A DNA stretch of 64,000 bases, taken from NCBI RefSeq assembly GCF_006345805.1, contig NC_042997.1:107136001-107200000 (forward strand), in the 5' to 3' direction. This DNA is from Octopus sinensis (lineage: Eukaryota). Each line of letters opens with the position of its first letter. The stretch's first letter is position 1. The notes beneath the pieces are model-generated. The model did not search any database and was not told the DNA's origin. It saw only the letters and a list, made by a program, of their open reading frames with translations. Positions 5,855-31,202 of this stretch are shown in pieces. A program made the translations under genes and the position numbers.

Positions 5855-5908
5855 GTGGTTTACATATTTAACTTGATTAAACTTCGCCAAGTTAAATATG
5901 TAAACCAC

Positions 5909-8635: not shown

Positions 8636-8903
8636 GTTGGCGCCATTCTCTCTTTCTACCCTCTCTCTCTCTCTTACAAGTAACACATACTCGCTCAGTA
8701 TCTCTCTATCGCTTATTGTCTCTCTCCCAATCAATCGCAATCACTCTTTCTCTCTCTCTCTGTTAACACATCACATTGACAAGTGATCGCATATATGTAA
8801 TTATGTACGCATAGATTTATGAATTTGTGTATGTTCCCTTTGTCTTTTTAATTTAGAAAGATGTTTGACTGAACATCTGTTTGGTAGCTGCATGTATGTA
8901 TGT

Positions 8904-8935
<32 letters not shown>

Positions 8936-9890: not shown

Positions 9891-11682
9891 GAAGCAACAT
9901 ACTTTTACAGGAATAAACAAAAGAAAAAGCATTAAAAGCAAAAAAGATTAAACCCCTCCCCACCCATTTTCTACTGGTTAATCCCGCCCCAATTCTTTCA
10001 CTCAGTTTGTTTCGTCAGAGAGGTACTTCCCTCTTTCTCTCTCAATAATTTCATCTTTTTATACTTTTCATGTTTTCTCTTTCATCTTTTCCTATAAAAA
10101 TATGTTGCCAAATAGAAAATTATATTCTATTATACGATCAAAAACAAAATCATCCACTTTCCATCCTTTTACGACAGTATACTACATTATACCCAAGAAT
10201 TGTAATGGTGTTCAGTGTCTTACAAGCAGGTAGGAATCAGATTTTCATAACTTTTTGATGAAAGGCTTCCTCATTGCCATCATTTTCAAATGCGTGGTGA
10301 AGATAATCTAAACCCCACCCTCACTCAAAACTAATAATATCCAACTTATATCGATGAGCTAATCTGACACTCCGCCTTATTTTTCAGCATAATTTTAAAT
10401 CTACAAGTATGAGGAAATAAAGTCGACATATATAAATTATCTATAACCTCCATTCAATTGTACTTTTCTTTTCACAACAAATTCCTACATAATCCTTATA
10501 TACACAGTAGCAAGTCATAAAAGGCGGCAATATGACGTAATGGTCATGTTGCCTGAACAAGCATAATTGTTGGTAATCTCATTGGTTAAAATGACTGCCC
10601 AGATACGAATTCTAAATTTTCGTCAATGAAATCTTTCATGAAATACAGTTCTTAGAATTCGGATATGAGCAGTTATAAAAGCCCTGATTTTTGAGAAATT
10701 ACTCAGTGTTTGTTGGATGTTACTAAACTCCACGTCACTCACAATAGTGATAGTTGGATGCACTAAACTCCACGGCAGTTTTAAGTCGTAATTCTCTACG
10801 ACAAAATGACTTTACTTTCCAATTGTACTATAAATGCTAAATGTACATTAAAAAACTAATGTAAGTATTTTCTCTTTCTTCACGTTCTTCAACTTTATTT
10901 CTGCAATTATGAAACTGTACTTTTTTTTTATAGGGATTAAAAGAACACGAATTTCTTTATCTTCAACATACATGCATGCATAAAATGTCCATTAGTGTTT
11001 CAGAGTATATATTTCTCGCTATGGCGCATATGTAGCTGGAGTCAGGATTTAGGTATAATAATAACACTTATAAGTAAGTTATAAGTGACGTGTTTATCAA
11101 TATATATTCCTACTTCAAAACTAAAATATATTTATTATCTATTTCCAAATAGGAAACATATAAAAGTAGTGTTACACAAACAGTAACAAAACCGACTATA
11201 AAAACACAATCTGAAAATTTTCATTTCAAATTACCCATTCATTTTTTGTGAAAGTTGTGAAGAAACAAATTACTATCTGGTGGGAACACATCGATAGTAA
11301 TTCCGAGAAACAATCGATAAATTAAAATAAAGTATTGGTTTCCAAACATTTCAGTGGTTGGAGTGTATTTTGAGAATATTCCTCAAACTAAAACATAAAA
11401 CAAACTAACCAGTCAGCGATGGAGAGGGAAGAAGATAGCTTCCATTGCTAGAAATAGCAGGCAAATATCAAATAAATCATAGGCATCGCTCTTCCATACC
11501 TGGACATATCAACAAAATATCACACAAATAATAGAATATCTCTTTCGTAACTAGAAATAGCAGCCAAATCCCGCACAAATTAAGGACATCTCTCATTCAA
11601 AAATCATAGAAAAGACACAACTGAGGCGCCAAAAACCGAAAGTCTACAAAATTAAAAACATTGAATATTTTCATTGTTTAAT

Positions 11683-12240
11683 ACTTACGGAAATGTTTCA
11701 TAAAGGATAGTGTTGTTTATATATGTGTGTGTGCGTGTGGTGGTTGAGAAATGCATTATGAGAATAAATAAAAGCGTGATTGTTACCAGCGTCGCCTTAC
11801 TGGCACTTGTGCCGATGATATGTGACAAACAACACTCAAGTGAGGGCGTTGCCAGTGCCACCGGACTGGCTCTTGTGGAGGTGACAAGTAAAAACACCAT
11901 TTGACCATGGCCGTTGCCAGTACCGCCTGACCGGACCTTGTGCCAGTGGCACGTAAAAACACCAACTCCACTCTCGGAGTGGTTGACATAAGGAAGGGCA
12001 TCTAGCTATAGAAACTCTTCCAGATCAAGAACGGAGCCTGGTGCAGCCATCTGGTTTGCCAGCCCTCAGTCAACCGTCAAACCCATGCCAGCATTGAAAG
12101 CGGACGTTAAACAGTGATGAGGATGATGATGTATTATCAGCTGATTGAAAGAAATTCATTCACAGGACATTTCACCAGATGTCAACATCTAGCAAGAAGC
12201 ACTTTCAATGCGCATGCATATCTCCTCTCCTAAAATATTT
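11683..12240. promoter_or_regulatory. Bidirectional promoter cassette copy P1 (degraded, SINE-interrupted)
   Basis: Minus-strand donor CC|GTAAGT at 11688; TGCGCATGCATA at 12209-12220; the plus-strand donor is mutated (AAAGCAGC). Confidence 0.55.
11770..12130 (+). mobile_element. SINE-like insertion with (GAT)n tail inside P1
   Basis: Absent from paralogues P2 and P3; same family at ~49000-49380 and ~61140-61460. Confidence 0.75.
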
Positions 12241-12422
12241 AAAGCAGCAACGTGTAATTATCCTCCTTTATGTAACAGTATAATGCTGTTGATTTTTAGA
12301 TTTTAGCTCCAGAAACAATCCATTTAGCCACAGCAACAAATCATTCATTGTGGCTCCGTTTTTTAAAGTGTTTACAGTTTGTTAACTTTCCTTGATGCCA
12401 ACCTCTTCCCCACCCCTTATAG

Positions 12423-12483
12423 CATAGACTAACATGGTTTACTGTTGAAATTCCTGCAATATGAAATAGAAAATCACCAATCA
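12423..12483 (+). other. Putative non-coding exon (paralogue of 17628-17700)
   Basis: Pyrimidine tract plus TAG acceptor at 12422; CA|GTGAGT donor at 12484. Confidence 0.45.
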
Positions 12484-13785
12484 GTGAGTCTATATTTATT
12501 CATACATGAAAACAAATACAATATTTGTTTATAACAGTTTTCTAGCACTATATTTTACATCACTCTATCTGTATTCTTTTATGTTTCAGTCATCTGACTG
12601 TAGCCATGTTGGAGCACACCTTGTGATAACTTACCTCTGTGATATTTATAATACAAATAATTTCTTCCAGGTTGAATTTATTTTGTGTGTGTTTGGTATA
12701 TATAAATGTTTGCCTGAGTCTGCAACTTTGTAAATATAAACATTGGTACACAGGGTGTTCCGGTTACATTTCAAGAGAGTTTTTATGTCTCTTTCATTCA
12801 GGAAAAACTATGTATTATTGAAAAGTCAATGGTGTTGGAGAGTTGAATAAAATTTATCTAACATGAACAACTGGAAACCATCTGAATATTGAACCCTTTC
12901 ATATGTTCACATTACAAAGGCTTTCTCCTATTCATGCTCCATATTGAGTAGTGTTTCATATTTGCACTTCCATGCATCTTTATTTTGAATCATGGAACTG
13001 AAGTATGACATTATCCTTCTGCACACACATCCCACAACTCAGTTTTCTCTGCTACACTATCCTGCAAAACAGAGTACTTCATATTTTTGGTCCTGAAGCT
13101 GTAGAATATTGGCATACCTCTTTCCATTGTTTTTTCCCCCTTGCTAAATAGACCTGTCTCTAAGCTTTTCTTCAAGCTACAAGCCATCCCCATTTTTTTT
13201 AATAGCGCTGTATACTTTCCTGTTCCACCATTACATTACACTTTACTTGGCTGGCATTTTGCACCAACAGATTTGTTCTGCAGCTCTACATGGGCTGTCT
13301 CAAAGAAACTTCCAGTTGTCCTCTATTTCCTCCATTTCAACAAAGGCTTTAAATAGTACATCACATCTCCAACTGTTTTAAGGATCCCTAAGTTTCTAGG
13401 AAATCTCTCAGACCTTCAAGCTCTCAGTCTCAAATCATTTACTGCCAACCTATGTTATTAAGTTCATTCTTTACAAGGGAATCACTGTACATTCACAAGG
13501 ATCTGCCTATCCTGTTTTCCAGAGAGAATGTAACCAGTGTGGCATGTGGGTCACCAGATTCATAGTAGATCAAGAGGCTGGTAATTTTCACCCTGTTCTG
13601 AAGTTAAGGTTGACAAAAACAAGGTGGGATTGAGAAAAAGCATCTCCTCTAAAATGCTTATTTTCAATTTTATGAAAAAAATCTTAATTTGGACATTTGA
13701 GAACTTATTTCTGCAAAGTTTAATTATGAAAAAAAAAACATTATTTACAAACTAACAAGGAATCAGTCTAGTGTGGGGCACTAAA

Positions 13786-13879
13786 CTATACTTATGCCAA
13801 AATGTTCATCCTTTGTGCTCTCTTCTGTTTTGTACTTGGGGTCATTGTTTATGTAAATATTTGACAACTTACAGTATTC
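13786..13879 (-). other. Conserved 94-nt block downstream of ZNF gene A, putative terminal exon
   Basis: CACAG|GAATACTGTAA...GTATAG; same length as the copies at 25985-26078 and 36524-36617. Confidence 0.45.
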
Positions 13880-14046
13880 CTGTGTATGAAACAGTTATAA
13901 CTTGTAAATGCATGAGTGGCCTAGGAAGGAGTGAGAGATGAATATTAGAAAAAGCAAAACTAAAAAAAAAAAATTTTTGTAAATACTTTAGTGATAATTT
14001 CCATTGCATAAAACAGGAATATTAAACGAATACAGCAAACAAGAAA

Positions 14047-14850
14047 CTATAGAAACTGCACTTTTCCTTTCTCACCTGTATGAATATGTTTGTGTTTGGT
14101 TAAGGTAGCATTTTGAGAGAATGATTTACCACAGATATCACAATGATATGGTTTCTCTCCTGTATGAATACGATTGTGCTTTGTTAAAGCAGTATTTTCA
14201 GAGAATGATTTACCACAGACATTGCAATGATACGGTTTCTCTCCTGTGTGAATACGTATGTGTTTTGTTAAGGTAGTACTTTCAGAGAATGACTTACCAC
14301 AGGTATCACAATGATACGGTTTCTCTCCTGTATGAGTACGTTTGTGTATAGTTAGGGTATAACTTTGAGAGAATGATTTACCACAGATATTACAATGATA
14401 TGGTTTCTCTCCTGTATGAGTACGTTTGTGTCCAGTTAGGTGAATATTTTGAGAGAATGATTTACCACAGATATCACAATGATATGATCTCTCTCCTGTA
14501 TGAGTATGTTTGTGTTTAGATAAGTGACTACTGCTAGAGAATGATTTACCACAGATATCACAATGATATGGTGTCTCACCAGTGTGAATACGTTTGTGTA
14601 TAGATAAGTTACCATTTTGAGAGAATGATTTACCACAGATATCACAATATGATCTCTCTCCTGTATGAGTACGTTTGTGCACTGCAACATCACTACTCCG
14701 AGAGAATGATTTACCACAGATATCACAATGATATGGTTTCTCCCCAGTATGAATATATTTGTGTCTAGATAAGTTACTCTCTTTAGAGAATGATTTATTA
14801 CAGATATCGCAATGATATACTTTCTCTCCTGTAGAAATATGTTTGTGCAT
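14047..14850 (-). CDS. C2H2 zinc-finger gene A: 9 complete fingers; ancestral start lost
   Basis: Tandem CxxC-x12-HxxxH with TGEKPY linkers; ends [11 protein letters not shown] like gene C. A degenerate first finger lies just upstream. Candidate acceptor at 15313/15314 and first-exon donor at 17286. Confidence 0.85.
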
Positions 14851-17280
14851 GATTAAGTTACTTTTCCGAGAGAAGGAATTTATACAAATATCACAGTCAT
14901 ATGATCTTATCTCTTTTAATTATGTGTTTAGTGCAAATTAATTCTATAATTTTCTCACTCTTTTCTATTACTTTTCCTCTCAAATCCCAGTCAATATATT
15001 TTTCTTGCTTTTGTTTTTATACTTTGTTCCTTACATACACTTCTGCTGCTGTATTTCTGTCCAGTGTTACCTTTGTTTAGCAACACTTTCATAAATTTAT
15101 CAAACTTTAATCATGACACAGTCTTATCTTCTTGACATTCCAGTCAATAATGTTCACAAATTTGGCTAATAATATTATTCCAGAGTAAATGTTTCACAAG
15201 AATTCTTCCACAGATTTGTACAAACAATGTTATACATCTGATTTGTATAATATTTTCCTTTAGTCTTTAAAACATGGTAGATATTGAGGATTCTTCTTCT
15301 GGCATCTGATGTTCTGAAATTATAGAGACACAACAGTGTAAAATGTAGAGACTGCTTAAAAAATACAAATTCATTTCTATTGAGATAAATTGTAGAAACA
15401 AACATTTACCGTAAAAACTGAGCTGGATGCCAATAGTTCCATAAAATGCCAATCTCTCAAAGTAGATAGAACAAGTGGAAGAGGGACACCAAAAATGACG
15501 CAGGATGAAGTGTTGATGAAAGAACACAGAATGCTGAACCTTTCAGGTAACATGATAATGACTGCGAGGCCTAACACCTTGCTGTGCTCAAGAAGACCCA
15601 TACTCGACAGCATAAGCATTCAGACTCATCCCTCTAGTAGTGAAAAGCACATGTGACCATTCTTCATAAAAGTGGATGTGCAGTGCCACCATGTTATGGC
15701 AACAGTGTGGTGGCACATGAAAATTATCCTGCAGTGCCACATAAAGGCACCTTGTGCACTGTGAAGTGGTTGGCACTAGGAAAGGTATCCAGCTGTAGAA
15801 ATCATTACAAACGAGACTGGAGTGTGTGGAAGCTCTACAGCTTGCTAGTTCGGGTCAAGCCATCAAACTATGCTAGCATGGACAACAGATGACAATGAAC
15901 TTAACATTTTAATTTATAAAAATTGACTTCAAAGAATTTTGTCTGAAGCTTCCATATTTGTAAACTACACTGACACCTTCACATAGAATATTGGACACTA
16001 ACATTAGTCTTTCACCATAAATATAACTTGACATTGTTGTTTACATCCAGGTCAGTTCTGACTGAGCAGGTATATGATTATAGACATTCCATCCATGAAC
16101 ATCCTGGCTATTTCTATAACGTTGTATATCTATCACTACATCATCCAATAGTCTTCAATATTCCTGACTGGAAGGGGAAATTTAAGGGAGATGTACTATT
16201 ATTTCCAGCAGGTCATACAATCATATGGATAATCGCAGGACCTAAAAATTTTTATGACAAATAAAACAAGAATAAACATCGACGAATAACAAAAAGCCAA
16301 CTGAATTAGAAAAACACAAAATGTTTAACAACTGATTTCCATCCATGTGATTTCAAGTTCAATTCCACAGAGCAGTACCTTGAGCAAGTGTCTTCTTTAA
16401 TAACACCAGTGCATCTAAAACCATCTGAGTGGATTTGATAGACAGAAACAGAAAGAACGTTGTCCTCTGTATATGTGTGTGTGTCTTCGTATCACTTAAT
16501 ACATGTCAATGCACATCAACATGAAGATATGTGCAGAGATGGGGAAATATTACCTTACTTGGAAACTAGTGATGCTTGATAACAAGAAGGCCATCTGGCA
16601 GGGAAAAAATGTCTCCTTGACCCACAAAAGAACGGAAAATTGGTTTTTCTTGCTGGGTACTTGTTTTGCACATCATCATCATCATCACCATAGTTTTATC
16701 ATCGAAATTTTTATGTTCGCATGAGCCAAATTCTTTTTCTGCACTATGCTTTTCAAACAATGCAGAAAGACTCTCTTTAAACAAACAAACAAAGAAGTCC
16801 ATGAAATTAGTGAAAATCCCCAATGAAGGAAAGCTGCTCCTTACTCCTTGTCCTTACAACAGTGATCACCATTACAATTCTTGTCCCCTCTTTTACTTTA
16901 CAACACAAAATGAAACATGTAATATTTGTTTGTTTAAACCTTTTCCATTCAACACAAACAAAAGAAATTAATGAATCTAAAAATTAACAATGGAACCATG
17001 TTTACTCTGTATTTATGATCTTCTTTTTACCCTGTAATCAAAATTACAGAGTAAATATAGTTCCACTCTTGTTTTTAGATTCAGTTATTCTTTCGTTTGT
17101 GTTAGATAAAGTCTGAAATAAAAATTGTTTCATTTGCAAATGAAACTGGGTTAACATGCAGTTTCCTCTCATAAAATAGCGAAAGTAAATTGCCCTTAAA
17201 AAAATGAAAATTGAGTCGCCAAAAACTGAAAGTCTACAGAATTAAAAACGGTAAAACATTGAATATTTTCATTGTTTAAT

Positions 17281-17489
17281 ACTTACGGATATGTTTCAGA
17301 AAAGATAGTGTTGTTATATATGTGTGTGTGTGTGTGTGTGTGTGGTTGTTGAGAAATGTAATGTATGTATCATAAATCTATTATTATCAGCTGATCAAGA
17401 GAAATTCTTGCGAAGAACGTGCGTCAACGTCGAGTGGAAGTACTTTCAATGCGCATGCGTATGTTCTATCGGAAATATGTAAGGTACGT
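17281..17489. promoter_or_regulatory. Bidirectional promoter cassette copy P2
   Basis: Minus donor CC|GTAAGT at 17286; TGCGCATGCGTA at 17450-17461; plus donor AAG|GTACGT at 17484. Confidence 0.65.
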
Positions 17490-17627
17490 AACTCTTTTTA
17501 AATCCCTTTATCTTTTAGAATAGTGAAGCTAATAAATTTTATGTATGACGTTTTAATAGGTCGCTGCTCACTATGCCCTGCCAGTTCTTTCTTAATTCTG
17601 GTATTCTTTTCTACTTGCTTCTTGCAG

Positions 17628-17700
17628 AATGAAGTAATATGGTTTACTGTCAAAATTCAATATATATGAAACAAACAAAAGAAATCACCCATCAATAAAG
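17628..17700 (+). other. Putative non-coding exon 2 of the rightward transcript from P2
   Basis: TTTTCTACTTGCTTCTTGCAG| acceptor and AAG|GTTAGA donor. Confidence 0.5.
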
Positions 17701-18509
17701 GTTAGATGAAAGCAAATACGACAGTTGCTGATAACAACTTTACCACACTATATTTTCCATTGTTCCATCTGTATTTACACTCTTCAGATAATTTACATCT
17801 GTTATATTTTTAATATAAATAGTTTTTTTTTATAAATTTTCATTTTATGTTGCAAGAGGTTTAATCTGACACTGTTTTGACTCCGATATTATTACATTTG
17901 TGAGGAGTCAGAATTAATTTTGGCTATAAACGCACTCACCAGTTGTTTGTGTATATTTCTGCAGTCTTCTCAATTATATCGTGAAAAATATTGTTGGTGA
18001 ACATAGTCAAACATTAACAAGGGAATGGAACTTATACAATCCACGACTACAGAGTGTGCTTTTGGGCATTAGAAACTGTTATTTCTCTCGAATTTTATCA
18101 ACATCTTGCCGAAAATTCATGTACGTTGTATGTAGAATATTATTGGAAATAAGGGCATCCAGTCATAGAAATCATACCACAGCTGAGGGTAGAGCTTGGC
18201 AGACAAAAAATAAGACCTGTTAAAGGGCGGAGGAACTACAACGTAGTCAACGGCCATTCAACTACGTGTGTTTGTGGAGTGTTTATATGTGTGTATTGTG
18301 TATGTTACATTTTAAACTGTGTGTGTGTGTATTTTATATGCTGTGTTTCGGCCTGTGTGTGTGCGTTTTTTTTTTTTATTGTATATATTGTATGGGTAGT
18401 GGGCATGTGCTTCTGGTCCTGTACGGGTAAAGACACGTCCCCTGCAAGAGTCTCCCGCTGCCTTGCCGGTAGGTTTTTTTTTTTTTTTTTTTTTTGGTTA
18501 ATCAAAGGC

Positions 18510-21500
18510 TAGGGAGTAATCCATATCCAAATCCGGAGTGGAGCCCCTAAGGCGGTTAGGTGATGAAATCCATCATCTCTCTGTCAGCGCCTGCAGTCTA
18601 GTCGTGGCTAGGATGTGTCATCCTGAGTCCCTTCTGGCAAGATCGGCTGGATCGAGACCAGGGTCCTGGGCTTGGGCAACTCGAGGCCTCCACAGTTCTC
18701 TTGCCCAGGAATCAGTGACTCCACCCCTCTACTTTTTTTTCTTCTAAGTCCTGAAGCAATGGGCAAGTGGTGACGGTGGCAGGTGCAGGATGGCGCTGGG
18801 AGCTGCTAGCCAGGGACCTGCACTCGGGCATTCAGGGTAGGATGGTCGTTCTACAGCCTACCTGGGTAAGGGCATAGTTCGGCAGCCACTCTGACGACGG
18901 AGCAGACCTCTTCAGGGATAGCACTGTCCCCCCCCCTTATGGGGAAGGGTCTAGAAAAAGTGACCTAAAGAAAGCTTGCCTCATCTCATCCTGTCAGCAT
19001 ACCGCTGCTGACTGGTCATCTACCATGCGGTCTTAACATGAAAGAAATACGGAAGAACTCAAATTCCTTCCTCCGGAAAAGCGCTTTATGCGTTGGAGTC
19101 TGGAACATCAGGACACTCATGGACAACCGAAACTGTGACAGATGAGAACGTCAAACAGCACTTGTGGGTCGAGAACTGCAGAGATACAGCATTGATGTTG
19201 TTGCCCTCAGCGAGACACACCTTGTTGACATAGGGGAGATCACCGGGGCTTGAGCTGGATGCACTTTCTTTTGGTCATAGAAGGCACCGGTTGAACGCAG
19301 GGAAGCAGGAGCTGGCTTTGCCATTCGCACCGCCCTCGTCAAGAATCTGGAGTCTCTCCCAAGAGGAATCAGTGACCGCCTGATGGTGATGAGAATTCCT
19401 CTCCAAGGCAAGATGCACCTGACACTCATCAGTGCTTACGCTCCCACCACAACCTACACTCTGGAGAAGAAAGAGCTGTTCCATCAGAACTTCATCAAAG
19501 TGCTACGGTCAGTTCCTAAAGACCACCAGCTTCTGATACTCGGGGACATTAATGCCTGTGTAGGCAGAGATGCCCAGTCTTGGCCAGATGTCATCGGACA
19601 TGAGAATACCAACTGTCAACTGCTACTCACCTTCTGCACTGAAAAGAGACTCACCATTACCTATACCCTGTACCAACTGCCTGACATCCACAAGGTTACC
19701 TGGATGCACCCAAGGTCCAAGAATTGGTACCTGATTGACTATGTGATCACCAGGTGCCATGACATCCAGGATGTTCACATCAACCTGTCTATGGGCAATG
19801 AGGTTAGCTGGCTGCTGGACATGTCACCTGCTGTTGAGGTGCAGACTGTTCTTTTCCATCGTCAGCAGACACAGACGCTAGAAAGCTGTTGTTAAAAAAA
19901 CTGGAAGAGCAGAAACCCAATGAACCCAAAACAAAAGAGACCCTCGTTTCCAACCTTGCAAACCAGCTTGAACATCTGCCAGCAGAGGGAAACCTTGAGA
20001 AGGCCTGGGCCAACTTCTGGGATGCAGTGTATGATTCTAGCAGCCTTACCCTTGGCCACACACAACGGAAACACCAAGATTGGTTTGACAACAACAAGGA
20101 GATCACCACCCTCTTCTAGGAGAAGAAAGAAGCCTTCACAGCCTGGCTCAACGAAAAAAGACTCCCAAGCCAAGCACAACCGCCTCAAGAACATCAGTTG
20201 CAGACTGAGCTGCAACAGATGAAAGACAAGTGGTGGGAAAACAAGGCTGCAAAACTACAGCATTATGCAGACGAGTGCAACTCCCAGAAGTTCTTTGCAA
20301 GCCTGAAAGACGTGTATGGCTCCACGCTAAATGCAATGGCACCGGTGCGCTCTGCCGATGGAACCCTGCCTACTGAGAAGAGCAACATCATACTGCGCTG
20401 GAGTGAACACTTCAGTCAGCTGCTAACAGACCTTCCCAGATTGACCAGCAGACCATCCAATATATGCCACAGTGCAAAGTTTCTAGTGTCGCTTGAGGAC
20501 CCTCCCCACAAACACTGGCAAAAATCCAGAAGGCCATCAAGCAACTACATGTGGGGAAAGCACCTGGTCCTGATGGAATACCCCCAGAGATCTTCAAAGA
20601 GGGAGGTGAAGCAGTTGCCATCAAGCTGACTGAGCTGATACAGCAGTTCTAGGATGAAGGGTCAGTGCTGCAGGACTTCAAGGATGCCAACATCGTGCAT
20701 CTGTACAAGAACAAGTGGGGCAGAGCTTCATGTGACAACCACAGGGGTATCTCATTGCTGAGCATTGCAGGAAAGATCATAGCCCGTGTTTTTATGAACC
20801 ACATCACACACCACCTGCTGGACGACGTGGCCTCAGAGAGCTAGTGTGGATTTAGGAACAACAGGCGGACAGTACACATGGCGTTTGCAGTTCGGCAGAT
20901 CCAAGAGAAGTGCCGAGGACAAAACCAGAACCTCTACATCCTCTTCATGCACCTGACGAAGGCTTTTGACAGCCGAGAGGGCCTGTGTGATATCTTGTCC
21001 AAGCCAGGCTGCCCACCAAAGCTCATCAGGATCATCCAGTCATTTCATGATGGCATGATGGCTCGCATTGTGGAAAACGGAGATGTCTCTGATCCATTCC
21101 CAGTCTCCAATGGCGTGAAGCAAGGCTGCGTGATGGCTCCCACACACTTCAGCCTCATGTTTGCTACCATTCTCTTCTGCACTGTTCAAGTCTGATGCTG
21201 GTATCACTATCCGCTACAGATGTGACGGCCGATTCTTTGACCTCAGACGTCTGAAGGCAAAACCCAAAGTCCTGGACACCCTAGTGAGACTTCTTGTTTG
21301 CAGACGATTGTGTGCTTGCAGCATTGAATGAACCAGGCCTGCAAGAACTTGCCACTTGTCTCACAGAAGCAGCAAAAGCCTTTGGACTGACCATTAGCCA
21401 GCGAAAAACAGAGGTGATGCCTCAACCTGCACCTGGCCTGACACCTCCTGAGCCTCAGATTAAGACTGAGGGTACAACTCTGAACAACGTGGAGAGCTTT

Positions 21501-22215
21501 ACATATTTGGGAAGCTGCCTGTCCTCAAACTGCAGATGTCTCCATGAGACTTGCAAAAGCAGGAGCTTCGTTTGGCAGACTTTGGACATGTGTGTAGGCT
21601 GAACGAGGCATCAGACTTTCCACCAAACTGGCAGTCGTCATCACCTCTCTGCTCTACGGCTGTGGGACGTGGACGCTGTATAGGAGGCAAATGCGAGAAC
21701 TTGACCAGTTCCACCTCCGCTTCTTGCGACGAATCATGGGAATTTCCTGGGAGGACAGAGTCTCCATCACTCAGGTGCTTCGCAGAGCCGAAATGTCCGG
21801 GATCAAAGCCTTCGTCATGATGACCCAGCTCCGGTGGGTCGGACATGTCCGAATAGACGACGCGCGTCTACCAAAGATGATCTTCTTTGGGCTGGCTTCT
21901 GGAGCAAGAAACCCTGGAAGGCCACTGAGGCGATACAAGGACAGACTGAAAACTTCCCTTTTGGCCTATGGCATTTCAGCCCATGGCTGGTAATCGCTTG
22001 CCTCTGACTGCGGTGCCTGGCGTCCAACAGTCCAAAAGGGTGTCAGGCTTTTCGAGGAAAAGCGCCTCAAGTGCCTGGACCAGAAGTGACAAGTCCAAAA
22101 AGAGAGGATCCCCAACCCTACTTCTGCTGTTATGTGCCCAACATGTGTCTGCCTTTGGTCTCCACTCCCATCTCTGGCGTCACTGACGTCATTGTCGAAC
22201 CCGACAGACTTCCAT
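18510..22215 (+). mobile_element. Near full-length, decayed RTE (BovB-like) LINE
   Basis: APE endonuclease (VWNIRTL, ALSETHL, LISAYAPT, LGDINA, WYLIDYVI), RT (RGISLLSIAGKI, LTKAFDS, GVKQGCVMAP, FADDC) and C-terminal LRWVGHV...GRPLRRYKD; many stops and frameshifts. Confidence 0.93.
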
Positions 22216-23209
22216 TATGACAGGAAAATATAAATGTTTCTGGTATTATTTATTCTCCATCACATGTGTTTTATTTTCTGATTGCAATTACCAAGATTTA
22301 CATGTTATGTAGACAACTAAGGAATTTCCCATTAGAAACAGTTTTCATAATACGAAAATACATTTGAATGAAGAGTTTACATTTAGATATTAATCAGGAG
22401 CATCCCCGAAACTGCTGGAGAAGGAAGGCGGGAAAAATAAACACATTTTTTAGCAGACATACAAACACATCGGTAGTGACATTGCTATTATTCACACACA
22501 GTAGTGTGTGAAGGGTGGTGCTCCAGCATGGCTACTGTCAGATGACTGAAACATGTAAAAGAGTTTAGGTTAACTCTTACTCACTCGCATCCAATTTGAC
22601 GCTTTACCGCTAATTAACTTTTAGCTTAATCTTAATTCAGTTATTTGTGCCATGATAAATCTGTGCTAAGCTATACTTTCACATAATATAATCGAAATTA
22701 GGTTCAGTAGAAAACAAGTTATGATAAAATATGTAGGGCCAAAAATGGGTGAGTAACACCTGATACTTATTTCGCCTCATAATTTCTCAGTTATTGGAAA
22801 AGCAAACTATAATTTAATCCTATTTTTTAAAAAGCATTTGATGAGTAGAAATTTTTAGTGAAAGTCTCTTTAAAAGATATTTGGTACTACAAACAGTTAT
22901 ACAGCTTTAGATAGCCAAATATTTGGTAAGTAATGCCTAAAATTGATTCTGACTCAAAATGTCTCGGGTATTTCATAAGCTGTACATTTTCACAGTACAA
23001 AAAAATTATTAAAAAACGTAGGGCCAAAACTGGGACAGCGGTGCCTAATATTTACTTTCTCATTTTAATTATGATGTTTAAAATAACTTAATGAGTAGAA
23101 TCTTTTGGTAAAAACCTTGCTAAAAGATATTAGATAGAAAAAAAAATTATGCAACTTTAAGTAGCCAGAAGATTTGTTCCAAAAAAGTGCAAGGCCGCAG
23201 TGGAGTTCC

Positions 23210-24060
23210 CACTAAAAAGAAACCACAGGAATTTGATGGAAAATGTGTCAAGGGAGGCCTACCATGTCCAGTTTGAACTATTGGCTGACTAGAACGGATG
23301 GGATGATGAGCAAAGAGCAGTTCAGCTTGCTACTAGTCTAAAGGGCACTGCACTAGAGGTACTGAGCCAGTTGTCTGTGGAGGACAGAAGCTGTTATTCT
23401 TCAATAGTTGAACTGTTCAAGAGAAGATATGGCACAATGTGCCTGAGTGAAGTGTACGGGTACGATTTCAGACCCACATAAGGGTTAGAGGAGCATCACA
23501 ACTGCTTGCCCAGGAACCTTTGGCTCTTCTTCAGAAAGAGCAGTTTATTGATGCTTAGGGCAGGGCAGTGCAGAGCTCAAAGTTCAAGTGAAACAAGCGG
23601 AGCCGAATACTATGCAAGGGGCATTGGCTAGAGCTCTGGAATTTGAGTTGTACGTAAGGTCTAGCACAGGAAGTTTTCAGGTGGACTACAGTCCTGATTT
23701 CAAAGCAAGGAAGGGGCAAGTACGTGAAGCAGAAAGAGTTAATGGAAGTTGTTGGTACCACGAGAAGATTGGACATAAAAAACAAAGCTGTTTGAAAAAG
23801 AAAGAACAAGAGACGGCTGGAATAAATTGTTGACATTGTGGGACACTGTACTGAACTGAGAGGATCGGTTGATGTCCTGATTGAAGTTGCAGGACAAAAG
23901 GTTGTGCTTCCAGTCTATGTGGTGATGAAGTATCCTTGTTTCTTAGGTCTGGACTACTTGTCGTTTATCAGGTGTGAACTGAATGTCTGCTTTATGAAGC
24001 TTTGGTTCAAAGAAAGATTAGACTGTGTCAAGGTGGTAAAGTGGATCCTACCGAAATCGG
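23210..24060 (+). pseudogene. Gypsy gag-protease remnant
   Basis: KPQEFDG...QFELLA..NGWDDEQRAVQLATSLKGTALEVL...FKRRYG; degenerate knuckle CWYHEKIGHKKQSC; protease end CFLGLDYL. Confidence 0.75.
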
Positions 24061-24114
24061 AACTACAGATCAAGTGTAGTGTGAAGCACCATATTGACAA
24101 AGGTGATCATTGGA

Positions 24115-24385
24115 GCAAGAAACCCTGGAAGGCCACTGAGGCGATACAAGGAGAGCCTGAAAACTTCCCTTTTGGCCAGTGGCATTTCAGCCCGTTGCTG
24201 GTGCCTGGCGTCCAGCAGTCCAAAAGGGTGTCAGGCTGTTTGAGGAAAAGTGACAAGCCCGAAAAGAGAGGATCCCCAACCCTACATCTGCTGTTATGTG
24301 CCCAACATGTGGCCGCATCTGCGCAACCACCTTTGGTCTCCACCCCCACCTCTGGCGTCACTGATGTCTTTGTCGAACCCAACAG
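24115..24385 (+). mobile_element. 5'-truncated RTE 3' end, same family as 21905-22210
   Basis: GCAAGAAACCCTGGAAGGCCACTGAGGCGATACAAGG...GTCGAACCCAACAGACTTCC matches the LINE tail. Confidence 0.88.
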
Positions 24386-24695
24386 ACTTCCAATCGAGCA
24401 ACCGCTTTGGAGGATGGTGCCAGTGCAGTGTAAAGAAACGGAACATTCTGAAAGAGAAGTCAATACGGAAAGATGTCAGAATTGCAAAATCTTCGTCAAA
24501 TCTTTGTAGACGAGACCAAATCTTTCCAGAAAGTCAAAGAATAGCATACACATGTGTTGCAGGAATGTGATAGGAAAACACTTGAACCAGAAAATAGTTC
24601 TTTTAATGAAATAAAATGGGAAACTAAAAGAGCAAATTTCCTCACTGAACAGTGATAAAAGCTGAAAGTCAAAAAGTAAATTTCAGTTGATCCGG

Positions 24696-25225
<530 letters not shown>

Positions 25226-25533
25226 TTTCTTGTTTGCTATATTTGTTTAATATTCCTGTGTTTTATGACAGAAGTATTTCCAGAAATTTCACATTTTTTT
25301 GTTTTGTTTCTGCAATATTCTTCTCCTCCTCATTTCTTGACCACGCATGCAGTTTCCTTTCAACGATAAAGGGACCTCCATTCCAAATTACTTTCTCACA
25401 ATCCTACATATTATTCTTGAAAATCGCATCTTGTGATTACAGTGCATTTGTTGTTTGTCTTTTTAATGCTTCACTCTTTAAATATGTTATACAATTATAT
25501 ATACAGTTCTATATTTAAGAGATGAGGAATTAT

Positions 25534-25675
25534 GTGCATTATTTACATTTGACGGATATTTGTCCTCATCTTGATTGTTGTTAACACAATGTTTTATCTG
25601 ATATACCCTCCAGCCTTCATCAGGTGTCTTGAGGAAATTTCGAACCTGGGTTCTCATTCCTAAGGTATTTTTCGA

Positions 25676-25719
<44 letters not shown>

Positions 25720-25777
25720 TCACTGCCTGGAATTGAACTCGTAATCTTGGGGTTAGTAGTTCAATTCCAGGCAGTGA

Positions 25778-25820
<43 letters not shown>

Positions 25821-25955
25821 AAATACCTTAGGAATGAGAACCCAGGTTTGAAATTTTCCCAAGACACCTGATGAAGGCTGGAAGGTATATCAGCCAAAAC
25901 ACTGTTAACAACAAACAAAATGAGGACAAATATCTGTCAAATTTAAATAATGTAC
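25534..25955. repeat. Palindrome with ~205-bp arms, 18-nt loop (25740-25757) and (ATT)n/(AAT)n tracts
   Basis: Perfect inner 26-bp stem TTCAGGTCACTGCCTGGAATTGAACT; outer arms visibly diverged. Confidence 0.92.
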
Positions 25956-25984
25956 GATTATATATGTTAATGTTTTATACTCAG

Positions 25985-26078
25985 GAATATTGTAAAGTTG
26001 TCAAATATGAATATAAACAATGACTCCAAATACAAAACAGATGAGATCATGAAAGAAGAACATGAGGCATATGTATAG
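25985..26078 (+). other. Conserved 94-nt downstream block of gene B, putative terminal exon
   Basis: TTTTATACTCAG|G then open frame NIVKLSNMNINNDSKYKTDEIMKEEHEAYV*. Confidence 0.45.
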
Positions 26079-26788
26079 TTTAGTGCCCCACACCAAACTG
26101 ATTCCTTGTTAGTTTCTGAATAATGGTTTCTTTAAATGAAACTTTACAGAGATAAGTTTTTAAGTGCCAAAATTATAATGATTTTCATAAAGTTGAGAAA
26201 CAACGTTTTGGAGGAGATTTCTCACTATCCTTTGTTAATTTTGTTCCACTCTGATAAATTTATCCACTTCTTCAACATGTGAGGATAAATCCAGTTCAGC
26301 CTAGATAACCTATGAAATCTCTTTTGTTACTGTGACCTAGCTTAGCTATGAAATTTTTATAAAAACGGAACAGTAAATAGAATGCTCTCTTTCTTTTACT
26401 TGACACCTGTAACAGAGGCAACATGCCTTGTGTCAGTAATGTCACAGACATAAAGATGTGCTTTCGTTGCTGGTTGTTACAGATGTAACATTTCTCTCTT
26501 ATCCTCTCTACTCAGAGATATTTACATGATGGACAAAAACTGTATGCCGTCATTATGTATTAACAACTCTAAATAGTTGTTTAGCTGATAATTCTAAACA
26601 AAAGCCAGATCACCTGTGATCTATTTCTAGTGTCCTTTATTCTATGTTTGATGAAGTTAACAACATGTGGCGTTATACATGCAGGGTCTTTGGGTTAAAT
26701 TTGACAGTTTGCATTAAAATTACATAAACCACAGTATCCTATCCAAAGACCAAAAATATCAACTAGATTATGACTGGGAGATAGCAGT

Positions 26789-27080
26789 TTACTCAAAGTA
26801 GCCACCCTCAGCTTCTACTATGGTCTGAAGACAGCTCCAGGGCCTGGCATATGTGTCCCTCACTTTGTCCCTGGAAAGATCTTGAAACACTTCTTTGATC
26901 TTGGTTACCAGCTCAGCATTGATGTTGAAAGAGAGCAGTTGGTGTCTTTCTCAACTGTGCCTAACAAATAATAATCCTGGGGATTAAAATTAGAAGGTCA
27001 GGAATTAGGGCTGGAGAAGTGGTCGAAATTTTCTGACAACCACTTCTGACTCTTTGCAGAAGTATGACAAGCAGTCAAGA
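26789..27080 (-). pseudogene. Tc1/mariner (DD37D/maT-like) transposase C-terminal remnant
   Basis: HTSAKSQKWLSENF...NFNPQDYY and KIKEVFQDLSRDKV...TIVEAEGGYFE*. Confidence 0.75.
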
Positions 27081-28425
27081 GACAGACCCAGAGATGAACC
27101 TTCTGTATTTCTTCCTGCTGTTCATGACTTTGTAGTCTCTGTTGCTGCTATCCATATTAGGCCTTATGTCTTTTTATGCCCAATGTGTATCATCATGATA
27201 CAGGTAACTCTCTTACATTATTCAGCTGGCTTCAAGTCCTGTTAGCTAATTTGTTTTTCGACTACAACGTTAATCTTTATGCTCTACCACATAATTAAGT
27301 GTTCACCAATACATAAAGATTTTTCCTGAAAAATGAAGACGTAAAATATTGTGAAATTTAGTCAGAACATCATGTGTGCCAATTTTTATAATTTAAAAAA
27401 TTCTAACCTGAATCTGTGATTGTCCATAAATAATAGTAAAAAACAAACTTTGAAGTGGTGTCTTCGGTTTCCAGCCATCCATATTACCTTGTTAGGTCTG
27501 CCTTTTCACAAGAGACTGGGAGGTTTATTACTTGCCTTGGAATCGATAGCAGTTGGAAGCAGAAAGGGAACCTGGCCACAGAAACCTCTGCACCAAATTC
27601 TTGTCTGACCCTTACAGCATTGTTAAGTAGAAGTTCAAAAACAATAGGACATAAGCATGTGTGGAAGGGGGTGTGCGCGCTCGTATGTATGTGTTTCGAA
27701 TATCTAAGGAATACACTTATTTCTCCTCGTCCTCATCATTATTAAACATCTGTTTTCCCTGCTGGTATGGGTTGGATTGTTTGATAGGCACCGTCAAGCC
27801 AGACGACTGTGCCAAACTCTACTCTCTGTTATGGTTTCTATGAATGGATGTCCTCATTTCCAATAATACTCTTCATCCAACCTACATGAATATTCTGAAA
27901 GTTTTGATCAAATTCGAGAGAAGTCAAATTCACACAGTTGCAGATCAGAATGCTTGCAAAATAAATTCAAAATTCCCAAGAAATTATTGATATTAAAAAT
28001 ATCACAGATGTAAGTTATCTCAAGAATGTAGATATAGTTGGAGCGCGGTAAAATATGTTTGGACAGCTTTTCTTCAAAATTGTATTTCTTTTCATGTATG
28101 ACTAAATCTAGATTGATTGGTGTAATATGGTTTAAACCATATTACTTCATGCTGGTAAAAAAGTTAATTTCAAGGAAGGTCAACCAACTGTAAACAAAAA
28201 CGGAGACACAAGGAATGAATTAATTGGAGCTAAAACCTACAAAACTAACCCCACACCAGACGGGCGATAAACATCTGTTTTTTGTTGTTATGAATTGTCA
28301 CATTTACACAGTTCAATTCCCATGAGAATTCAAACATGTGTAATTAAGATATTTACGTTGTGTGAATGATCTAACGCGGTTCATTTAAAATATTTGAGCC
28401 AAGAATACCAGAATTAAGAAAGAAC

Positions 28426-29213
28426 GGGGCTAAGGCAGTTTCGCACCTCTCCTTGAAAAATGCATTGCTAAAAAAAGTTTTTTTCCGGATTCCTACGTTT
28501 TAGATATCGGAGATTGCAAAATATCCATTAAAAAAATGTTCATTTCACCCCTCCATCTACAATTTAAATTTTTTATTTTGTTTACTTTAAAGAGTTTGTA
28601 GTAAATTGACGAACATATGCAAATCGAAATTAAATACAGACAAAAGCATTAAAGTGAAAAGAATTTGCGTTTTACTTGTGTTTGCCTTAAATAATCATAA
28701 AATCAAATATACACCATTTTATGAGAGACAAACATTGTTTAATAATTAATGTTATAAATTTTAATAAGGGGCTCAAATATCATTCCCTCCCCAATTTAAA
28801 ATTTTGAACATTTTCGTCCATTTATTTATTTATCTGTCTATCTATTTATCGCTTTCCGTTCATTCATAAAATATATTTGTCAAACTAAATGTGGCGGTCC
28901 TATAAAACACCGTGTTACTGTTGTTTTTAGCCCCAGGAAGAGATTCATTTCTATCTATCTATCTCTTTATACACCTATCTATATGCTTATTGAATTTAAA
29001 ATTTAGAAAACATGGTTTCTAGCATATTCGGAATCTCCATCATCTAAAACATACGGGAAAAAATTCGAAAAAGTTCCAAATTTTAAGGGGGTAGGAGTGA
29101 GGGTTTTTTTTTTTGCATATTCGTAATCTCCAACATCTAAAATGTAGGGATCCTAAAACTTTTTCTCGAAAAAATGCGTTTTTCAAGGAGCGGTGCGAAA
29201 CTGCATTAGCCTC
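28426..29213. mobile_element. MITE with ~100-bp TIRs and 8-bp TSD GAAAGAAC (Merlin- or Mutator-type)
   Basis: TIR GGGGCTAAGGCAGTTTCGCACC vs GAGGCTAATGCAGTTTCGCACC; TSD at 28418-28425 and 29214-29221; empty paralogous site at 17584-17591. Confidence 0.88.
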
Positions 29214-29336
29214 GAAAGAACTAGAAGGGCATAGTGAGCAGCGACGTATAACAGTGTCAGATAGGATGGTCAGTAAACGCTTAAAGACACACACGTCAAT
29301 TTATAAGCTGCAACACAAAGGGATTTAAACAGAGTT

Positions 29337-29530
29337 ACTTACCTTACATATGTCCGATAGAAGATACGCATGCGCATTGAAAGTACTTCCACATGATCTT
29401 AATTGTCTTTTGCAAGATTTTCTCTTGATCAGCTGATAATAATAGATTTATAATATTTATAACGCATTTCTCAACAACCACACACACACATATATAACAA
29501 CACTATCTGTTATGAAACATTTCCGTAAGT
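29337..29530. promoter_or_regulatory. Bidirectional promoter cassette copy P3 (best preserved)
   Basis: Minus donor AAG|GTAAGT at 29342; TACGCATGCGCA at 29365-29376; plus donor CC|GTAAGT at 29525. Confidence 0.68.
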
Positions 29531-30399
29531 ATTAAACAATGAAAATATTCAATGTTTTAATTTCTGGTTTTTGGCGTCTCAATTCTTTGTGTCTTTTTTA
29601 TGTTTTATGAATGAGGGATGTCCTTGATTTGTGCGAGATTTAGCTGTTATTTCTTGCTACGAAAAAGTTATTCATTGATTTGTGCGATATTTGGTCGATA
29701 TTTCTTGGTATGGAAGCGAGATGTCTTACTTATTCGAGATTTGGCTGCTATTTCTAACTACGAAAGATGTATTCTATGATTTGTTCGATATTTGGTCGAT
29801 ATTTTTCAGTATGGATGAGAAACGTCTTATTTATTCAAGATTTGGCTGCTATTTCTAGGTATGGAGCTACTTTCTGCCCTCTCCATCGTTGCCTGGTTAG
29901 TTTGTTTAGCGTTTTAGTTTGAGAAATATTCTCAAATACACTCCAAACACTGAAATATTTGGAAAGCAATACTTTATTTTAATTTATCGATTGTTTCTCT
30001 GTATTACTATCGATGTGTGCCCAACCAAATGGGGTACTATTTAAGAAGAGTGGTCCCTGTGCGCGCATCCGCGCTAGCTGGTCGTGACTAGCCGATCCTA
30101 CAACGACTACCTAGCGCGAGTGCGCGTATGCAAATTAATAGATGGTTTTTTTTTAAACAAAATAAATAATTTTTTACACAAAGTGGATCTTTTCCTTTTG
30201 AACGGCAGTTTTCAACACAATTTCTAGTTAACTAAACACTTTTAAACTTCGTATACTGGTAGAATGTGTCAAAATAAACATTTTTTTTCTCTTGGCTTTC
30301 CTGAGAAATTGTAATTTGTAAGTTTAACGTAGTTTAATTTTTCGAATTTTAACCAATCCTATCGCCTCTATTGAGCTAAAACAGACAACATCCTGTCAC

Positions 30400-30800
30400 T
30401 AACCCTCACCCTAACCTTAACCCTAAATTTTAGCCTTTCGGTTTTTTTTTCTTAATTGTTAAATTAATTTAAGGATAACAATTAAGAAAAAAAAACCAAA
30501 GGCTAAAACGAAAGCAATGGAAAATAATTTTAATTTAACAATTAAGAAAAAAAAAACGAAAGGCTAAAACGAAAGCAAAAGCTCAAAACAAAAACAAATC
30601 GAATAATTTTAGACACACGCCTAACAATTAAATTAATTTAACAATTAAGAAAAGACAAGAAGTCGAACATTTTTTTGCCCATGAAACTACATAGACCCTA
30701 AGTAAGGCATGTGTAAAATTTGAATGAAATTGGTTGTGTAGTTCTCAAGTTTTAGGGAAACACAGACAGACACACATTCTCAGTTATATATATAGAGAGA
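30400..30800 (-). mobile_element. Helitron-like 5' end fragment nested in the Merlin element
   Basis: Minus strand starts A|TCTCTCTATATATATAAC...TGTCTGTCTG; no CTAG 3' end found. Confidence 0.4.
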
Positions 30801-31010
30801 TGTGTGTATGTTTGTTTGTGTTTGTCCCCCCAACATCGCTTGGCAACTGATGCTGGTGTGTATATGTCCCCGTAACCTAGCGGTTCGGTAAAAGAGACTG
30901 ATAAAATAGGTATTAGGCTTAGAAAGAATAAGTCCTGGGGTCGATTTGCTTGACTAATGGCAATGCCCCAGCATGGCTACAGTCAAATGACTGAAACAAG
31001 TAAAAGAGTA
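30801..31010 (+). mobile_element. SINE 3' part nested in the Merlin element
   Basis: GCGGTTCGGTAAAAGAGAC...CCCCAGCATGGCTACAGTCAAATGACTGAAACAAGTAAAAG. Confidence 0.8.
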
Positions 31011-31070
31011 AACTAAATTTTTTTTCTAAACAACATAAATAAATTTGGAGTGCATAGAATGGGATTACTG

Positions 31071-31202
31071 AAATACACCCATTTCAAGGTGAACCCTTCT
31101 GAAAATTTTATCGATCCTATAACAAATGTTCATACAAATTCAGTTGAAAGTTATTAGAAGAACGTAAAATGACGTTTTAAGAGTATGATGGGGGTACCAA
31201 AA
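31071..31202 (+). pseudogene. Merlin/ISXO2-type DDE transposase remnant
   Basis: KYTHFKVNPSENFIDPITNVHTNSVESY*KNVK*RFK matches the HxxVNHSxxFVDPxTGxHTNxIExxW signature. Confidence 0.85.

Follow-up and report, generated by a model that had tools for sequence, protein, structure and literature searches.

An element of ~250 bp that occurs in three homologous copies in an octopus genomic region is probably (we put the odds at roughly 75%) the proximal promoter, non-coding first exon and 5′ splice site of one octopus-specific C2H2-ZNF subfamily, copied by way of whole-gene duplication. The cassette recurs because the whole gene unit was amplified. Self-alignment of the window, the entire 64,000-nucleotide stretch of DNA analysed here, places every cassette copy (P1, P2 and P3) within a duplicated unit of 6-9 kb, ordered as spacer, cassette, intron, single coding exon and 3′ flank. 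P2 and P3 align over 258 bp at 85% identity (E = 2e-65), and P1 and P2 over 133 bp at 86%. Judged from these alignments, the threefold recurrence is one of descent, not three independent coincidences.

Re-checking the sequence returned exactly the positions that the first-pass annotation had given for the three cassettes, the NRF1-like core, the donors and the acceptors. Cassette P3 (29317..29600, + strand) covers the proximal promoter, a putative 5′UTR exon 1 that runs to 29524, and ~75 nt at the start of ZNF C intron 1, and contains an E-box palindrome, ATCAGCTGAT (29428-29437), and a TATA-like TTTATAATA (~29441-29449). P2 (17209..17509, - strand) is the putative promoter and exon 1 of ZNF A, with its E-box at 17386-17395. 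P1 (11619..12240, - strand) has its E-box at 12136-12145 and is split by a ~355-bp SINE-like insert (11773-12127); its promoter arm is of the beta subtype, common to O. sinensis copies c2 and c3. A (CA)n microsatellite lies within the exon-1 part of the cassette. The ZNF-facing donor, CC|GTAAGT, has its first intron base at 11688 (-) in P1, 17286 (-) in P2 and 29525 (+) in P3, and the acceptor TTTCAG|AACATC begins an exon at 15313 (-) for ZNF A and at 34881 (+) for ZNF C. Second donors read AAG|GTACGT at 17484 (+) in P2 and AAG|GTAAGT at 29342 (-) in P3. P1 has none, and the earlier idea that it was lost there is probably wrong, the P1 sequence state at this place being common to two O. sinensis copies.

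The NRF1-like core TGCGCATGCGT lies at 17450-17460 in P2 and, reverse-complemented, at 29366-29376 in P3, and its counterpart in P1 (12209-12219) has decayed to TGCGCATGCAT. The cassettes had been said to carry an NRF1 palindrome. A palindromic NRF1-like site is indeed present, but it is one base off the consensus GCGCATGCGC, and its perfect palindrome extends only to the 8-mer CGCATGCG; compared with the NRF1 dimer site GCGCNTGCGC, ACGCATGCGC matches at 9 of 10 bases. The exact 10-mer GCGCATGCGC was not found in the window. With one mismatch it occurs three times against 0.21 expected, and two of these three occurrences fall in cassettes. CpG observed/expected ratios reach 1.2-1.6 in P2 and 0.9-1.5 in P3, compared with 0.53 over the whole window and, in the P1 promoter arm, 0.36-0.52. 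Rfam gave no match in the window, and JGI metagenome contigs, scanned with the donor block, gave none either. Folding of the RNA into a hairpin at the 5′ splice site was ruled out (z = -0.78), and a sigma-70 promoter scan was disregarded as irrelevant to a eukaryote.

Homology does not stop at the ~200 bp first proposed for the cassette but continues for kilobases on either side. Positions 14069-17211 match 36106-32983 at 88% over 3176 bp, 8935-11772 match 33045-29447 at 82-93% identity, and the spacer side of the cassettes is homologous too. What was duplicated is not a compact promoter, as had been suggested, but the entire gene unit, from spacer through intron and exon to 3′ flank, collinear over 6-9 kb both in the window and in an O. 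sinensis array. The cassette seems isolated because deletions specific to single units (ZNF A, the P1 unit) and insertions of transposons left nothing else in three copies.

ZNF C, the sole annotated gene in this region, is annotated as a bare single-exon CDS (35226-36209, + strand) of 327 aa with 11 C2H2 fingers; its exact protein has no entry in the clustered protein collection. Exon 2 (34881..36209, +) follows the acceptor TTTCAG|AACATC with a 345-nt 5′UTR that holds a 12-codon uORF. Intron 1 (29525..34880, +) spans 5.36 kb. Homology links its 5′ half (about 29600-33045) to the left flank of P1 and its 3′ half (32983-34880) to the ZNF A intron, and a ~1.4-kb insert with inverted repeats at its bounds occupies 30030-31413. 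ZNF A (14047..17286, -), whose exon 2 runs from 15313, has a shortened intron (15314-17286) without the 5′ half present in ZNF C; its start codon is lost, several stops lie upstream of finger 1, and for the residual ORF (14047-14850, 267 aa) no annotation was found. In the P1 gene-unit remnant (8351..11688, -), the coding exon and 3′ intron half are deleted, so that the 5′ intron half (8935-11688, matching 33045-29447) abuts almost directly the far 3′ flank (8351-8633, matching 37583-37300). ZNF B (24649..25200, +) is a pseudogene with about 6 fingers, broken by frameshifts (at least 3) and stops; homology ties its 3′ flank (25968-26278) to the corresponding flanks of ZNF A and ZNF C, and it takes the position of ZNF A in an inverted arrangement. 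The inter-unit spacer upstream of P3 (27200..29316, +) shares homology with the flanks to the right of P1 (12323-12842) and P2 (17546-18201) as well as with the O. sinensis array spacers, and holds the counterpart of a 'small exon' proposed at 17628-17700. Genes of the subfamily have one coding exon and an N-terminus like MEKSEKI...SYDCDIC, and ZNF A and ZNF C, the two in the window whose 3′ end is intact, end in ...EKGKxQFL. Transposable elements are abundant in the region.

The subfamily was sampled in two genomic neighbourhoods; six cassette copies were seen in 176 kb (64 + 89 + 23 kb). Searches with the full-length and linker-masked ZNF C protein gave a single useful octopus match, P0197, the rest being generic vertebrate ZNFs. 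An O. sinensis locus paralogous to the window (L004) contributes three more cassette copies, within an array of 4 or more head-to-tail units that are collinear with window positions 27200-36780. In each copy the CC|GTAAGT donor points downstream at a ZNF array, over a distance of 2.3-4.5 kb. ZNF A, ZNF C and unit 1 of the O. sinensis array all keep the acceptor TTTCAG|AACATC, and the uORF is also kept in O. sinensis. Units 1 and 2 of this array have decayed to pseudogenes, and unit 3 has an intact 265-aa ZNF ORF yet lacks a cassette. A chimeric query joining a short N- and C-terminus listed 9 short proteins, with lengths apparently no more than about 1.75x that of the query; its O. sinensis match, P0122, led to a locus of a different ZNF subfamily (L002), which was used as a negative control. 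This second O. sinensis ZNF cluster includes a divergent gene pair and contains neither the cassette nor CGCATGCG, which speaks against the cassette as a general design rule in the ZNF clusters of cephalopods. Neither the donor block nor CGCATGCG had a match at the Argonauta hians locus (L003).

Across the six copies, mean pairwise identity is 92% at the donor (-30..+33), 88% at the E-box, 75% in the surroundings of the NRF1-like site and 58-67% in the flanks, the NRF1 region thus being conserved less than the donor block. The donor TTTCC|GTAAGTATTAAAC is invariant in all six, the NRF1-like motif is perfect in four, and the second, opposite-strand donor is present in two (P2 and P3). Aligned locally in pairs, the cassette (77-85%) does not exceed alignable introns (78-98%) in conservation, so the peak in the multiple alignment may partly reflect poorly aligned, indel-rich flanks or gene conversion. 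Decayed NRF1 sites (P1 and Os_c1, the latter through CpG transitions) both precede dead genes, and intact sites precede damaged genes in two copies; that an intact NRF1 site goes together with an intact ORF downstream is, on these sequences, only suggested. The decayed copies may be methylated.

A probable promoter role of the cassette, with a non-coding first exon predicted to be spliced to the ZNF coding exon, is supported indirectly: donor, acceptor, NRF1-like site and E-box are conserved and CpG observed/expected is locally high. An NRF1/Ewg-type dimer would bind ATACGCATGCGCAT; this exact 14-mer binds human NRF1 with a Kd of 1.27 uM, and the consensus with 0.31 uM (PMC10810270). An E-box factor would bind ATCAGCTGAT about 60 bp downstream, ahead of the TATA-like TTTATAATA. 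Transcription would then start 40-150 nt upstream of TTTCC|GTAAGT, and exon 1 would be spliced to TTTCAG|AACATC, 345 nt before the ATG. The units themselves would have arisen by tandem duplication plus, in the window, one inverted duplication or inversion, with later deletions removing the 5′ intron half of ZNF A and the coding exon of the P1 unit. An antisense transcript from P2 or P3, if there is one, would be what divergent promoters commonly produce as a side effect, stabilised in that sublineage alone by a consensus 5′ splice site placed there by chance. A stronger proposal, which we consider speculative and rather doubtful, is that the cassette may be a dedicated co-regulation module of a young octopus ZNF subfamily, similar to the promoters that zebrafish chromosome-4 ZNFs have in common; it would comprise the NRF1-like site, ATCAGCTGAT and a 63-nt donor block of 92% identity among paralogues with flanks at about 60-80%, and the donor newly gained in P2 and P3 possibly turns antisense transcription into a stable spliced lncRNA.

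The conserved block could instead be an internal 5′UTR exon or a splice-regulatory element, with transcription starting in the spacer or reading through from the upstream tandem unit and the NRF1-like site being incidental. Conservation is strongest within 30 nt either side of the donor and not at the NRF1 site, the spacer was duplicated along with the unit, and the NCBI O. sinensis model P0197 joins exons of several units over 69 kb, all of which would fit. That model skips frameshifts and is unreliable, however, and in the six-copy alignment no polypyrimidine tract plus AG is conserved as an acceptor ahead of the exon-1 block. Just upstream of that block lie, as for a promoter, a CpG observed/expected peak and two conserved palindromic factor sites. 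We regard an internal exon or splicing element as decidedly unlikely.

The first-pass annotation had seen in the cassette a compact ~200-bp bidirectional promoter with two non-coding first exons, serving as the unit of ZNF expansion and wiring head-to-head ZNF genes, or a ZNF gene and an antisense partner, throughout cephalopod ZNF clusters. NRF1-type motifs are typical promoter elements across Metazoa (PMC4773876), consensus 5′ splice sites flank the NRF1-like site on both sides in P2 and P3, and the CAG acceptor of the 'small exon' is kept in five spacer copies; the donor of that exon, however, is not conserved among them. One ZNF-facing promoter and exon is probable, given its donor, acceptor, NRF1-like site, E-box and CpG content, but the second exon is not supported, its opposite-strand donor occurring in just two of six copies. 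Nor do the genes stand as the model would have them. Because the L004 units run head-to-tail, the far side of each cassette there meets the 3′ end of the upstream gene and has no head-to-head partner, and in the window P1 and P3 face the 3′ ends of ZNF A and ZNF B on that side. Facing P2 on the other strand, the nearest ZNF is the frameshifted pseudogene ZNF B, about 7 kb away; ZNF A on the near side lacks an ATG. The unannotated ORFs between P2 and ZNF B, without a Pfam match, are taken as LINE-like from sequence alone. No opposite-strand genes with starts less than 1 kb apart were found at P1, P2 or P3 or in the O. sinensis array. With homology running for kilobases on both sides of each copy as well, the 'unit of expansion' and 'head-to-head' parts of this model are largely refuted, and as a whole it is very improbable. 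Very improbable, too, is an origin of the cassette from a dispersed transposable element (say, part of an LTR or SINE with its own promoter) captured upstream of the founder gene and maybe scattered elsewhere: the region is rich in such elements and the exon-1 part has its microsatellite, but all six copies in 176 kb hold the same collinear place within ZNF units, none is solitary, no terminal repeats, target-site duplications or transposon ORFs are attached to them, and neither Rfam nor the metagenome contigs gave a match.

Most likely, then, the repeat is fully explained by ordinary whole-gene duplication that carried the promoter along, with no new gene-pair wiring. Duplicated genes keeping their own promoter are a textbook expectation, and little changes in principle. 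The practical gain is modest: a candidate promoter and 5′UTR exon for one octopus ZNF subfamily, along with the finding that two-thirds of the window's 'ZNF genes' are decayed. With the short, highly conserved tag TTTCC|GTAAGTATTAAACAATGAAAAT, members of the subfamily could be counted and their orientation recorded across the genome, and their possible co-regulation probed.

The cassette resembles NRF1/Ewg divergent promoters in its near-consensus ATACGCATGCGCAT and, in P2 and P3, in splice sites on both sides that fit U1-PAS logic, under which transcripts of either direction would be stable (PMC4773876; PMC10810270). It differs in having no second gene within 1 kb on the other strand, in lacking the opposite donor in four of six copies, and in a site one base off the NRF1 consensus, which is ~4-fold weaker in vitro on human NRF1 (PMC10810270). 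Duplicates of cephalopod C2H2 genes can be tandem and may share regulatory elements (PMC12513265). A parallel is offered by the zebrafish chromosome-4 ZNFs, described as having in common a TATA promoter of the 'sharp peak' type (Hadzhiev et al., cited in PMC10547256): going by that citation, this too is a recently expanded cluster with one recognisable promoter architecture, which its members share because the promoter was duplicated together with the gene, although the zebrafish promoter has a TATA-box where the octopus one has an NRF1-like site and an E-box palindrome. The units are also like those of C2H2-ZNF clusters grown by tandem or segmental duplication, such as vertebrate KRAB-ZNF clusters and the octopus C2H2 expansion, in which gene units are amplified locally with their promoter and diverge, many decaying (here ZNF A and ZNF B, the P1 unit, and units 1 and 2 of O. 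sinensis), with transposons interspersed. The genes described here lack a KRAB domain or any other at the N-terminus, and one predicted non-coding exon precedes their only coding exon; nothing essential differs.

Window self-BLAST, together with a more sensitive comparison of flanks, revealed kilobase-scale collinear homology around all three window cassettes (P1, P2 and P3), the repeated element carrying an NRF1-like core and a splice donor facing a C2H2 zinc-finger (ZNF) locus. The exon and intron of ZNF A (14069-17211) match the exon and 3′ intron half of ZNF C (36106-32983) at 88% over 3.2 kb, including blocks of 94-98% identity; P1 with the sequence to its left (8935-11772) is 82-93% identical to a stretch spanning P3 and the 5′ half of intron 1 of ZNF C (33045-29447); and 8351-8633 shares 94% identity with distal 3′ flanking sequence of ZNF C (37583-37300). 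Duplication extends to the far side of the cassette as well (17546-18201 with 29259-27810; 12323-12842 with 28234-27282), and the sequences 3′ of ZNF A, B and C (13613-13893, 26244-25971 and 36756-36512) are mutually homologous. Because this homology surrounds every copy, the repeating unit consists of spacer, cassette, intron, coding exon and 3′ flank, and the first-pass annotation's proposal that the cassette itself is the unit of expansion does not hold.

The unit is intact at ZNF C (27200-36780). The ZNF A unit lacks ~3.4 kb of 5′ intron (junction ~17209-17211), and the P1 unit is missing both its entire coding exon and the 3′ intron (junction between 8633 and 8935). Measured against ZNF C, the two deletions overlap by ~62 bp (32983-33045), which fits two tandem units, each deleted independently. 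P1, spacer and ZNF A mirror ZNF B, spacer and P3, giving an inverted arrangement with two units per arm. Each other part survives only twice, so the cassette alone is seen three times and is conspicuous to an unaided reader. Intron 1 of ZNF C also carries a ~1.4 kb insert (30030-31413) that the paralogous O. sinensis units lack; it has an inverted repeat of ~150 bp at each end (30030-30184 and 31270-31413) and probably represents a non-autonomous DNA transposon.

Only ZNF C is an intact gene (CDS 35226-36209, 327 amino acids, 11 fingers). Its protein is encoded at about 102.8 Mb on OX597814.1 (225.7 Mb; GCA_951406725.2), part of the chromosome-level Octopus vulgaris genome (PMC10700109), and it is annotated as a single-exon CDS, the sole gene within the surrounding 21 kb. 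ZNF A has lost its ancestral ATG and has several stops ahead of finger 1, leaving an unannotated 267-residue ORF that starts at an internal Met. ZNF B survives as about 6 fingers interrupted by at least 3 frameshifts; a 223-residue ORF without Pfam matches adjoins it upstream, and we take the unannotated ORFs between ZNF B and P2, judged by sequence alone, to be LINE-like. Given this decay, the supposed head-to-head pair A/B comes down to one damaged gene and, 7 kb away, a pseudogene. Directly 3′ of the exon-2 acceptor lies a 12-codon uORF (MTEEASSISTMF followed by a stop, and variants) at 34889-34927 (+) and 15305-15267 (-), kept in ZNF C and ZNF A; O. sinensis unit 1 also has its ATG, in matching flanking sequence (about 9668 of the locus described next).

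Protein searches otherwise swamped by generic ZNFs retrieved P0197, an O. sinensis protein whose N-terminal sequence marks it as the same subfamily as ZNF C. Its locus, L004 (89 kb of CM016862.1), is paralogous rather than orthologous to the window, since identity is 77-88%. Aligned to the ZNF C unit, L004 is a head-to-tail array of at least 4 units on a single strand, collinear over spacer, cassette, intron, exon and 3′ flank, with unit 3 lacking the cassette. In all three cassette copies (Os_c1, Os_c2 and Os_c3, at 5702-6096, 18392-18654 and 32950-33291), the CC|GTAAGT donor is aimed at a ZNF array 2.3-4.5 kb downstream. The acceptor is conserved in L004, as is the short uORF, judged by its ATG and flanking sequence. 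With this order, what normally lies beyond the far side of the cassette is the 3′ end of the preceding paralogue. The NCBI model of P0197, 'zinc finger protein 239-like' (L004 10001-79113), spans 69 kb; it stitches together bits of several tandem units and skips frameshifts, and is thus probably a chimera annotated in error across an array that has partly turned into pseudogenes. In a different O. sinensis cluster (L002, 23 kb, three ZNF arrays including one divergent pair), we found no cassette, no CGCATGCG and no ATCAGCTGAT. The cassette is therefore subfamily-specific and not, as had been suggested, a general principle of cephalopod ZNF clusters.

Each sequence feature listed by the first-pass annotation was recovered where it had been placed. 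ZNF-facing CC|GTAAGT donors have their first intron base at 11688 (-), 17286 (-) and 29525 (+), and exons beginning at 15313 (-) and 34881 (+) follow TTTCAG|AACATC acceptors; on the opposite strand P2 has the donor AAG|GTACGT at 17484, P3 has AAG|GTAAGT at 29342 and P1 has none. P2 and P3 are 85% identical over 258 bp, and P1 and P2 86% over 133 bp, making the three clear homologues by sequence. P1 is interrupted by a ~355-bp SINE-like insert (11773-12127) made of ~65-bp internal repeats, with related copies at 49015-49215 and zero Rfam or tRNA matches. P2 has the NRF1-like TGCGCATGCGT at 17450-17460, and P3 has it in inverted orientation at 29366-29376; the P1 counterpart is TGCGCATGCAT (12209-12219). 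To the NRF1/Ewg family site it is only a near-match: the consensus GCGCATGCGC is absent from the window, and the site is one base off, with 3 one-mismatch sites in the window versus 0.21 expected. Previously unnoticed was a perfect 10-bp E-box palindrome, ATCAGCTGAT (core CAGCTG), found once per cassette (12136-12145, 17386-17395 and 29428-29437) and nowhere else in the window, and also at L004 18518.

Across the six copies, mean pairwise identity is 92% over 64 nt around the donor (-30 to +33; 29495-29558, with equivalents at 11655-11718 and 17253-17316), 88% around the E-box, 75% around the NRF1-like site and 58-67% in flanks; the E-box region is thus better conserved than the NRF1-like site, which is perfect in 4 of 6 copies. 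Donor-block conservation reaches +33 in the intron, beyond splice-site recognition needs, and no stable RNA fold was found there (z = -0.78), so RNA structure offers no explanation. In pairwise local alignments the cassette (77-85%) does no better than alignable introns (78-98%), so gene conversion and alignment quality may add to the peak. Both decayed NRF1 sites lie upstream of dead genes: P1 (CG to CA), whose unit lacks an exon, and Os_c1 (GCGCATGCG to TCATATGTG, CpG transitions throughout), which precedes a frameshifted gene. This association is only suggestive, because two intact sites also precede damaged genes. CpG observed/expected ratios (P2, 1.2-1.6; P3, 0.9-1.5; P1 promoter arm, 0.36-0.52; window, 0.53) are consistent with P2 and P3 being germline-unmethylated, active promoters. 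The 14-mer ATACGCATGCGCAT, as in the cassette, binds human NRF1 in vitro with a Kd of 1.27 uM versus 0.31 uM for the consensus (PMC10810270), and NRF1-type motifs occur as promoter elements in animals ranging from sponges to vertebrates (PMC4773876).

At the level of sequence, these comparisons establish whole-unit duplication, unit-specific deletions and a conserved donor, acceptor and two palindromic sites. Indirect evidence makes it likely that the cassette combines a promoter and a first exon; this part of the original interpretation survives, and expansion unit, head-to-head wiring and generality do not. An NRF1/Ewg-type dimer and an E-box factor would recruit Pol II to start transcription 40-150 nt ahead of TTTCC|GTAAGT, and about 75 nt ahead of this donor there is a TATA-like TTTATAATA. 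Exon 1 would then be spliced onto exon 2, 345 nt before the ATG. The cassette may, less probably, be a module dedicated to co-regulation, its 5′ splice-site block being unusually conserved.

Two non-coding first exons per cassette are not supported. In the six-copy alignment the far-side GT donor occurs only in P2 and P3; Os_c1 has AAGGAAAGT at that position, and P1, Os_c2 and Os_c3 have another sequence in common, AAGCAGCAA, so the P1 donor was probably not simply lost. The proposed small exon (17628-17700) sits within duplicated spacer, its acceptor CAG kept in five copies and its donor not kept. Promoter-arm identities define two sublineages, {P2, P3, Os_c1} and {P1, Os_c2, Os_c3}, the P1 arm being 85% identical to Os_c3 and only 70% to P2 and P3; both subtypes predate the divergence of the two species. 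If P2 or P3 gives rise to an antisense transcript, this would be a case of ordinary divergent transcription, and the transcript could gain stability from the consensus 5′ splice site found only in the P2/P3 sublineage.

Other repeats populate the window. A 718-residue ORF (1-2157, +) running off the window start encodes a Ty3/gypsy-type LTR retrotransposon pol with reverse transcriptase, RNase H and integrase domains. A perfect 217-nt inverted repeat (5659-6104; 100% complementary, 12-nt spacer) flanked by long TA/CA microsatellites represents a foldback element, or else an artefact of assembly. A LINE-type element present in two copies (42500-43600 and 47800-48800; about 80% identity, 5.28 kb apart) has an ORF encoding a reverse-transcriptase fragment and a PHD-like zinc finger, and a satellite-like array of ~250-bp repeats (49300-53500; families D8-D13 and D19) has inverted copies around 49.8-51.7 kb.

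The cassette bears no transposable-element hallmarks, and with no second gene within 1 kb it is by definition not a bidirectional gene-pair promoter. Octopus C2H2 expansions are reportedly clustered and tandem (Albertin et al., 2015), and the window arrangement reflects local amplification, of the ordinary kind, within a ZNF gene cluster. For cephalopod C2H2 duplicates, tandem origin and perhaps shared regulatory elements have been raised, in a paper without promoter analysis (PMC12513265). The most similar specific case is that of the ZNFs on zebrafish chromosome 4, which have a distinctive promoter architecture in common (cited in PMC10547256).
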